Part shown: piece by piece, positions 672 through 63,195 of the stretch
How positions within the stretch are numbered: the first letter of the stretch is position 1
Layout: every line of letters begins with the position of its first letter
Assembly: GCF_006345805.1 (NCBI RefSeq)
Contig: NC_043001.1
Coordinates: 29,574,001 to 29,638,000 of the forward strand
DNA from: Octopus sinensis
Taxonomy: Eukaryota
DNA: 64,000 nt
Direction: 5' to 3'
Notes under the pieces: generated by a model
Told to the model about the DNA's origin: nothing
Databases searched by the model: none
What the model saw: only the letters and a program-made list of their open reading frames with translations
Translations under genes and position numbers: made by a program

Positions 672-803
672 CTTGAATGTGTCTTCAACTGACGATGAAA
701 GAGAATTCTTTATTGATACATCTCCTGTAGTGGGGGATATTGTAAAATACACAGCAGCTAATCCATCACCAGTAATTGCATAGGTGATTGTTCGAAAAGG
801 TAA
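672..803 (-). CDS. Cadherin exon B14 (44 aa, [32 protein letters not shown]...TFK)
   Basis: tttcaag acceptor, gtaaa donor, 132 nt. Confidence 0.9.

Positions 804-63195: not shown

Follow-up and report, generated by a model that had tools for sequence, protein, structure and literature searches.

How calcium occupancy at the linkers between extracellular cadherin (EC) repeats relates to the stiffness or elasticity of a long cadherin is a question for tip links, for FAT/Dachsous and for CELSR, systems in which, to our knowledge, atypical linkers are single exceptions. The stretch of DNA examined here, a window of 64,000 nucleotides from Octopus sinensis (contig NC_043001.1, positions 29,574,001 to 29,638,000), raises the same question for an entire row of joints: it holds the middle part of LOC115211772, a cadherin gene whose linkers have lost most of the usual calcium ligands one after another. 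What, then, would hold such joints together, and to what kind of cadherin do they belong? The reading favoured here, which we consider moderately probable on the sequence evidence, is that of a giant lophotrochozoan homologue of PCDH15/Cad99C, in which about 60 joints would each carry an arginine and a single calcium ion at site 3.

Exons were defined on the minus strand of the window from stop-to-stop frames and inspection of splice sites, and residues within EC repeats are given in E-cadherin numbering. Twenty-eight exons were found, spanning 63195..672, in strict alternation of two kinds and all of them AG...GT in phase 0/0. The 14 ‘A’ exons (180-192 nt) carry the final strands of an EC, followed by the linker and the opening strands of the EC after it, and the 14 ‘B’ exons (123-153 nt) encode the EC middle. 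Splicing and translating them, a check that the initial annotation of this DNA had proposed, joins all 28 in frame into a product of 1489 aa that is identical to residues 2990-4478 of the Octopus sinensis RefSeq protein of LOC115211772 (P0121, 7530 aa). In a profile count the window runs from the end of EC28 to the middle of EC42, out of the 71 ECs of P0121. The product matches Pfam Cadherin (PF00028) with E 3.9e-139 in 13 stretches, and its best PDB sequence matches and best fold matches are multi-EC cadherins; it is a member of the cadherin superfamily, built from tandem EC repeats.

The initial annotation had described these repeats as keeping only the ligands of calcium site 3, and the counts behind that description were reproduced. 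None of the 14 B exons has an intact LDRE or LDYE motif; the linker is reduced to x-N-x-x-x-P, with N in 13 of 14 cases and D in the other (A2, IKDQFLP); DxD is kept in 13 of the 14 A exons, the exception being A12 (MGITNP); and the F-G loop Asp is found in 11, with Glu in one more (A14) and neither in A1 and A13. Counted by junction, 12 of 14 retain the complete set of four site-3 side chains, if the Asp at position 102 in A2 is counted; of the other two junctions, one has the F-G Glu and one, in the EC encoded by A12/B12/A13, has lost both DxD and the F-G Asp. The stronger claim, that site-3 ligands are all that is left, holds only in part. The linker Asn, DxD and F-G Asp are indeed kept and D67, D100 and D103 are lost, but acids at E11 and at the E69 position often survive: among the 13 complete ECs of the window the D67 position is acidic in none, the E69 position in four (EC30 D, EC32 D, EC38 E, EC40 E) and E11 in seven.

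Two further features of the linkers had been passed over in that annotation. The residue directly before the linker Asn is Arg in eight and Lys in three of the 14 window linkers, so that the typical linker reads x-R-N-x-x-x-P (an ‘RN’ linker), and the linker is one residue shorter than DxNDNxP. The difference in length is also seen in alignments to a profile of the family, onto which 318 of 323 family linkers fall without an insert, as against canonical linkers, 33 of 38 of which require an insert of one residue. Because the linker motifs lie inside exons, a choice of other splice sites could not restore DRE or DxNDN.

The same pattern runs through about 60 consecutive ECs. Over 264 kb of the minus strand, searches with A- and B-exon profiles returned 55 exons of type A and 52 of type B, and their alternation is perfect over that distance once two divergent B exons are added by hand. 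The sole exception to the two-exon unit is an EC outside the window (C5 ~29684100-29684400, about +110.1 to +110.4 kb in window coordinates), where A and B are fused in one exon and the intron is lost. Among the 68 scorable junctions of P0121, the D100 slot holds R or K in 52 and position 102 holds N in 50 (and D in 6 more), and D134, D136 and D195 are present in 57, 55 and 57, respectively; acids are found at D103 in 6, at D67 in 8, at the E69 position in 30 and at E11 in 42.

Proteins of about 7000 aa with RN linkers were found in gastropods, bivalves, a chiton, other cephalopods, a nemertean and a brachiopod, most of them under the automated name ‘protocadherin Fat 4’. In the other mollusc members of the family about 63-68 ECs were detected, and the mollusc orthologs are collinear with P0121, EC by EC. 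Among 15 orthologs the window junctions show hardly any variation in the Arg, in the Asn (or a fixed Asp) or in D134, D136 and D195, and conservation of the RN joints predates the divergence of the mollusc classes. A set of 567 non-canonical family junctions from 11 species was compared with 151 junctions of canonical controls (FAT1, FAT3a, a Fat4-like protein and a giant canonical cadherin): E11, D67 and E69 are all acidic in 117 of the 151 control junctions and in 16 of the 567 family junctions.

These comparisons bear directly on whether the array could be a degenerating, mis-annotated or artefactually assembled row of repeats with no selected function, a possibility that we regard as scarcely credible. 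It is true that at several joints octopus no longer has the E11 or the Arg that other molluscs retain, that some five ECs restricted to cephalopods are more degenerate than the rest, and that a false duplication lies at an assembly gap. Against this, 28 of 28 exons are open and correctly bounded, the long orthologs of gastropods, bivalves and a chiton keep both the order of the repeats and their D134/D136/D195/N102/R set, and an alignment of 2349 aa with a congeneric protein shows 81% identity and 9 gap columns. Pseudogene decay was rejected on the strength of the open phase-0 exons and the collinear, conserved orthologs; the linker pattern is real, systematic and under selection.

The five or so divergent ECs begin inside the window, with exons B11-B14 (13485 to 672), and continue to about -17 kb, corresponding to P0121 4097-4660. 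No counterpart of them could be aligned in 15 other molluscs, and they appear to be cephalopod-specific extra repeats. They hold the most degenerate motifs, among them A12 without DxD and A13 without the F-G Asp.

What, then, might an RN joint bind? A linker Asn and three Asp make up the full ligand set of calcium site 3, and in this family the four residues are kept or lost together. Over the 567 junctions, an Asn or Asp in the linker goes together with D134, D136 and D195 in the EC that follows, at odds ratios (OR) of 14-17 (p 1e-17 to 1e-22). These counts pool non-independent orthologous junctions and rest on profile alignments, so that the p-values presume more independence than there is; the effect is large even so, and is visible within octopus alone (OR 10-20, p <= 0.003). 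All four side chains are retained in 441 of the 567. A structural precedent is provided by PCDH15 EC5-6, which is without XEX and DRE, has PPNNQ in place of DXNDN and keeps DXD and XDX; its crystal structures contain one Ca2+, at site 3, and display three different inter-EC orientations, and site 3 is the highest-affinity site in CDH23 EC1-2 (PMC7547225). In their primary structure the octopus linkers follow the same ligand logic (DRE lost, Asn102 kept, DXD and XDX intact), as would be expected of site-3-only linkers of the PCDH15 EC5-6 type. They differ in that the PCDH15 linker is a single joint and the octopus linkers number about 60 in a row, and in that RN linkers add a conserved Arg and often an acidic E11 and an Asp at the E69 position, and are shorter by one residue. 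Since the four site-3 residues co-vary, and since PCDH15 EC5-6 offers a precedent, one Ca2+ per joint at site 3 appears to be the best-supported reading.

Compared with a canonical joint, the derived ECs show the following changes. DxNDNxP has become x-R-N-x-x-x-P, with the Arg in the D100/x101 slot, Asn102 kept and a non-acidic residue at 103; of the DRE in the preceding EC no more than a single Asp is left, at the E69 position; and in the next EC, DxD and the F-G Asp have stayed intact. The single Ca2+ of each joint would sit at site 3, atop the next EC, and the joints would rely on the highest-affinity calcium site alone.

The arginine may be the other half of this arrangement. R or K occupies the D100/x101 slot in 408 of the 441 site-3-intact junctions; of these 441, 72% have an acidic E11 and 59% an acid at the E69 position, mostly Asp (223/441). 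Junctions with R/K tend also to have an acid at the E69 position (OR 4.3, p 1.7e-4) and one at E11 (OR 2.3, p 0.027), and one or both of these acids are retained in 372 of the 408 R/K junctions. We infer that the Arg could fill the Ca1/Ca2 pocket and pair with the surviving E11 and E69-position acids. The charge count supports this, as the net charge would then match that of a canonical linker: five acids less one Ca2+ and one Arg leave -2, as do eight acids less three Ca2+. Pairing of this kind could stiffen the joints without calcium, and an RN joint may accordingly be either more flexible, like PCDH15 EC5-6, or locked by its Arg.

The same arginine might be assigned a different role, in which its guanidinium group neutralises the cluster formed by DxD and the F-G Asp, no calcium is bound at all, and the array forms a rod or chain that does not depend on calcium. 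Co-occurrence of R/K with D134, D136 and D195 (OR 4.2-4.9) would fit that arrangement, as would the position of the first RN linker of P0121: VNVIRNTASP aligns at the PCDH15 EC9-10 linker (LQPSRIP), which is calcium-free and bent, and where Cad99C reads VRHVATVPP. However, EC10 of PCDH15 and Cad99C is without DxD, whereas the mollusc RN ECs keep it together with the F-G Asp; the whole site-3 set of three Asp and an Asn is preserved, and PCDH15 EC5-6 binds Ca2+ with the same set; and three to five acids are too many for one Arg. Calcium-free joints are on balance unlikely.

Very unlikely, in turn, is the opposite departure from one calcium ion at site 3, a rigid and canonical-like rod with two or three Ca2+ per joint, coordinated by substitutes (E11, the E69-position Asp, D136 and backbone carbonyls). 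The frequency of acids at E11 and the E69 position would supply some of those ligands, but D67, D100 and D103 are nearly always non-acidic, the pocket holds a cation in the form of the Arg, the linker is one residue short, and PCDH15 linkers with milder losses already drop sites (PMC7547225). AlphaFold models, computed without ions, speak on both sides and do not decide between straight and bent joints. RN repeats are predicted with confidence to fold as chains of ECs, with a predicted local distance difference test (pLDDT) score of 87.2 and a predicted TM-score (pTM) of 0.51 for a model of four ECs, and 86.1 and 0.65 for a model of two. In Foldseek comparisons the four-EC model is extended and not folded back (root-mean-square deviation (rmsd) ~10-12 Å to straight four-EC structures, vs 36.9 Å to kinked DN-cadherin), as a rigid rod would be; the two-EC model, however, comes no closer to any solved EC pair than 6.2 Å (CDH23 EC12-13), with TM <= 0.52.

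The second part of the question, to which cadherins these repeats belong, is answered at the two ends of the protein. PCDH15 is the vertebrate tip-link protocadherin, known as a deafness and Usher-syndrome protein. At its N-terminus P0121 has a signal peptide, then nine ECs whose linkers are for the most part canonical (IEDINDNAP, VLDKNDNPP, IQNVNDNPP, VLDVNDNAP), after which the RN array begins. Residues 1-1189 of Cad99C, the insect orthologue of PCDH15, which is located on microvilli (PMC2171266), align with P0121 5-1169 in one collinear BLAST segment pair (E 3e-111), and for P0121 1-420 the best match outside the family is Cad99C at E 7e-52, vs ~1e-21 for protocadherins. In the PDB the longest collinear stretch for the N-terminus belongs to PCDH15 (residues 122-506). 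The EC2-3 linker DGDD is shared, and is followed at the start of EC3 by a two-Cys loop that reads VTDGDDRSPAFDYQTCVRVDGVCI in octopus, VLDGDDLGPMFLPCFL in PCDH15 and VQDDDDQEPSFIYQGCTPLNGVCI in Cad99C; in a multiple alignment the EC5-6 linker is non-canonical in all three proteins, and so is the linker after EC9.

At the other end, the C-terminal EC, membrane-adjacent region, transmembrane helix and tail of Cad99C match the C-termini of the family with E 5e-20 to 6e-34, and no homology at either terminus was found in the FAT1, Cad87A-like and giant canonical controls. The tails share WSRY.KY and ETQSLNMYVP with Cad99C, with EYETQSLNMYVP lying between WSRY.KY and the T-x-L end, and those of orthologs end in TTIL, TTML or RTEL where Cad99C ends in TTEL, a T-x-L PDZ ligand. 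This tail was found in 87 of 1.84e9 representative proteins. Among the ten carriers looked up are proteins of molluscs, one protein each of Lingula and Seison, and locust cadherin-99C; Tubulanus is among the named carriers, and a word-based search with the nemertean tail returned family members only. No Pfam domain was found in the tail. In Argonauta hians it is annotated as a separate 737-aa ‘protocadherin beta-2-like’ protein.

The octopus protein thus resembles PCDH15 and Cad99C in its signal peptide, its collinear EC1-EC9, its transmembrane helix and its tail, and apparently in its membrane-proximal region, and departs from them in size: these have 11 ECs and the octopus protein at least 71, probably about 77, with some 60 extra RN-linker ECs inserted after EC9. 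A profile of the RN ECs scores highest on EC9 of Cad99C (76.9 bits, vs <= 54 for others), which suggests that the array grew from an EC9-like repeat together with its linker. In keeping with the homology, no second octopus locus was found to match the parts specific to EC1 and EC3.

The name ‘protocadherin Fat 4’ points elsewhere. FAT proteins also are type I membrane proteins with a very long EC array. FAT linkers, however, are canonical, with <= 0.19 RN-like linkers per EC vs 0.4-1.0 in the family of the octopus protein. The EGF and laminin-G domains of FAT1 and FAT3 (PF00008, PF02210, PF00054) are missing from P0121 and from orthologs with a complete C-terminus, being absent from the Pfam lists of P0121, P0125, P0126 and P0128; for the C-terminal 620 aa of P0127, Pfam Cadherin is the only match. 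Membership of the FAT family was rejected for want of EGF/laminin-G, for the non-canonical linkers and for termini that match Cad99C. CDH23, the tip-link partner of PCDH15, is likewise a long tether cadherin (27 ECs) with occasional non-canonical linkers; unlike the octopus protein it has mostly canonical ones, and no terminal homology between the two was found.

How far the gene extends was assessed from the genome and from the orthologs. A protein search of the genome placed the N-terminal exons at C5:29763833-29794416. The RefSeq protein P0121 has no membrane anchor; it ends at C5:29443728 (window about -130 kb), and the transmembrane exon lies ~78 kb further downstream. In orthologs with a complete C-terminus, the last one or two ECs are canonical and are followed by a region that is not cadherin, a transmembrane helix and the conserved tail. 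Octopus exons that encode this helix and tail were located at C5:29356944-29366177 (window about -208 kb), on the same strand, reading ...WMDDPWAALVALAAIIILL...WSR / YTKYLNQYR...FETQ / SLNMYVPPDEAE...VNPLF, and readable as far as VNPLFNK. Given the positions of the N-terminal and tail exons, the gene spans at least 437 kb and has room for ~8 more ECs; the RefSeq model is probably truncated at its 3' end by about that number of ECs, together with the transmembrane helix and tail. A sucker-enriched cadherin with 77 ECs has been reported for O. bimaculoides, according to a paper that cites the report (PMC6339937). The 71 ECs of P0121 with room for ~8 more fit that count, and LOC115211772 is probably the counterpart of that cadherin, so far as the citing paper describes it.

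The order of parts that would result is a signal peptide and EC1-EC9, ~60 derived ECs, a short canonical end, the membrane-proximal region, the transmembrane helix and a Cad99C-like tail, and at about 4.5 nm per EC the whole might form a filament of roughly 300-350 nm. The initial annotation had suggested a mechanical, tether or extracellular-matrix role. A tether fits the homology to PCDH15 and Cad99C; a role in the extracellular matrix found no support, the orthologs and the downstream octopus exons encoding a transmembrane helix and a Cad99C-like tail. By homology with Cad99C on microvilli and PCDH15 in tip links, a tether on apical protrusions would be the most plausible function, and links between such protrusions, for example microvilli or sensory bundles, a likely setting. 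A fuller proposal, tentative and rather doubtful, is that in the lophotrochozoan lineage a tip-link-type cadherin became a ~350-nm tether through ~60-fold amplification of an EC9-like repeat, with a hitherto undescribed Arg-plus-one-calcium linker whose built-in cation takes the place of Ca1 and Ca2 and leaves the high-affinity site 3 alone in use.

Several observations weigh against the identification as a PCDH15/Cad99C homologue with Arg-bearing, one-calcium joints. The orthology is argued from BLAST, profile searches and motifs, not from a tree. The Pfam family PCDH15_12th (PF23206) matches Cad99C weakly (E 0.0056) and does not match the mollusc and Lingula proteins, and exon-level searches of the genome with Cad99C were either swamped by single-exon protocadherins or empty. 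P0121 lacks its 3' end, the tail exons being assigned to it by strand, order and comparison with orthologs. As for the joints, the profile alignment leaves the placement of the Arg ambiguous between D100 and x101, and the window counts for E11 and the E69 position leave many octopus Args with no acidic partner. The pooling of related junctions, mentioned above, belongs here as well.

In the literature, no mention of LOC115211772 was found, and nothing usable on the function of mollusc ‘protocadherin Fat 4’ or on PCDH15 in molluscs. Nor was an expanded PCDH15/Cad99C homologue of lophotrochozoans found stated there, the 77-EC report being known through a paper that cites it. An O. vulgaris expressed sequence tag named Oct-PCDH15 exists.

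The exons of the window and the features of its assembly gap are collected in Table 1. The last kilobase ahead of the gap repeats the first kilobase past it, which indicates that overlapping contig ends were joined with Ns and that the tandem duplication is false; the two copies are 96.9% identical, with 24 gap columns in 1028 and many small indels. P0121 joins A7 to B7 exactly as the window model does, and neither uses the A7 and B6 sequence of the lower copy. A hidden EC at the gap was considered and rejected: when 15 mollusc orthologs were aligned collinearly, none showed an insertion at A7|B7, and hence the gap hides no EC. In another octopus, two protein models (P0001 and P0002, metaclust) both stop at the last residue of exon A7, so that these two models lend no independent support to the A7|B7 junction; this suggests that the spot breaks assemblies in more than one species.

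Table 1. Exons and assembly features in window coordinates (1 to 64,000), listed in the order of transcription, with the gap features last.
Feature	Position	Strand	Content
Exon A1	63007..63195	-	End of EC28, linker TRNLNGP, start of EC29; DxD SDAD; F-G Asp missing
Exon B1	59751..59873	-	Middle of EC29, without DRE
Exon A2	59396..59581	-	Linker IKDQFLP (Asp replaces Asn); DxD TDAD
Exon B2	57535..57657	-	Middle of EC30; IIDD, Asp at E69 position
Exon A3	57100..57285	-	Linker DRNPSPP; DxD NDVD
Exon B3	54300..54425	-	Middle of EC31
Exon A4	53002..53190	-	Linker RKNLFAP; DxD IDQD
Exon B4	51418..51546	-	Middle of EC32; LATD, Asp at E69 position
Exon A5	51072..51257	-	Linker KRNLNPP; DxD QDSD
Exon B5	48549..48701	-	Middle of EC33
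Exon A6	42779..42970	-	Linker IRNDHSP (Asp at position 103); DxD TDED
Exon B6	40948..41076	-	Middle of EC34
Exon A7	40226..40411	-	Linker NRNMNTP; DxD FDFD; last exon ahead of gap
Exon B7	29727..29867	-	Middle of EC35
Exon A8	28086..28274	-	Linker IQNENSP; DxD RDND
Exon B8	26599..26730	-	Middle of EC36
Exon A9	23849..24037	-	Linker SSNEKAP; DxD TDDD
Exon B9	19612..19749	-	Middle of EC37
Exon A10	18909..19097	-	Linker RKNNNKP; DxD IDRD
Exon B10	14987..15118	-	Middle of EC38; LSLE, Glu at E69 position
Exon A11	14266..14451	-	Linker NRNFNTP; DxD TDND
Exon B11	13354..13485	-	Middle of EC39; opens stretch without aligned orthologs
Exon A12	10568..10747	-	Shortened linker VHNSCP; DxD lost (MGITNP)
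Exon B12	7427..7558	-	Middle of EC40
Exon A13	4770..4952	-	F-G Asp lost (VRNIN); linker ERNQFGP; DxD TDND
Exon B13	3528..3653	-	Middle of EC41
Exon A14	3175..3363	-	F-G Glu (AEEKG); linker IRNLFVP; DxD TDAD
Exon B14	672..803	-	Middle of EC42; gene runs on past window
Assembly gap, 100 N	39917..40016	.	Inside intron A7->B7
Upper copy, 1-kb contig-end overlap	40017..41036	.	Contains A7 and part of B6
Lower overlap copy	38905..39916	.	Frameshifted A7 copy (39172-39294) and partial B6; outside gene model

The introns are rich in repeated sequence. A retrotransposon remnant lies at 44261-45556 (+), where a frame of 431 aa matches Pfam RVT_1 (E 1.7e-19), and frames at 34296-37707 (-), 46696-47163 (-) and 60556-61176 (-) resemble fragments of related retrotransposons by eye; four of the other retrotransposon-like frames were tested against Pfam and gave no match. 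A short interspersed repeat occurs in both orientations (1366-2250, 9011-9310, 16402-16790, 25646-25972, 32357-33232, 62428-62805 and others), and its copies at 1.4-2.2 kb and 32.4-33.2 kb are followed by tandem sub-repeats. A long purine-rich (GAA/GAG-like) tract lies within 184-531, and microsatellites are very abundant, with tracts of the TA/CATA type at, for example, 31.0-34.1 kb and 37.8-39.0 kb; the purine tract and the microsatellites yield long spurious open frames in all six frames.

For the study of cadherin mechanics, about 60 consecutive joints of one derived type would offer a clean system in which to examine the site-3-only linker, and the RN array allows a test of whether one arginine can stand in for two calcium ions. 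The octopus protein bears, in addition, on what tip-link-type cadherins do in animals that have no vertebrate hair bundles, and the automated name ‘protocadherin Fat 4’, now attached to dozens of mollusc proteins, would need correcting. If the fuller and more doubtful proposal of a ~350-nm tether is right, the mechanics of this molecule would be set by its sequence and not by ambient calcium, and it might serve microvilli or sensory bundles, such as those of octopus suckers, as an elastic link of giant size.

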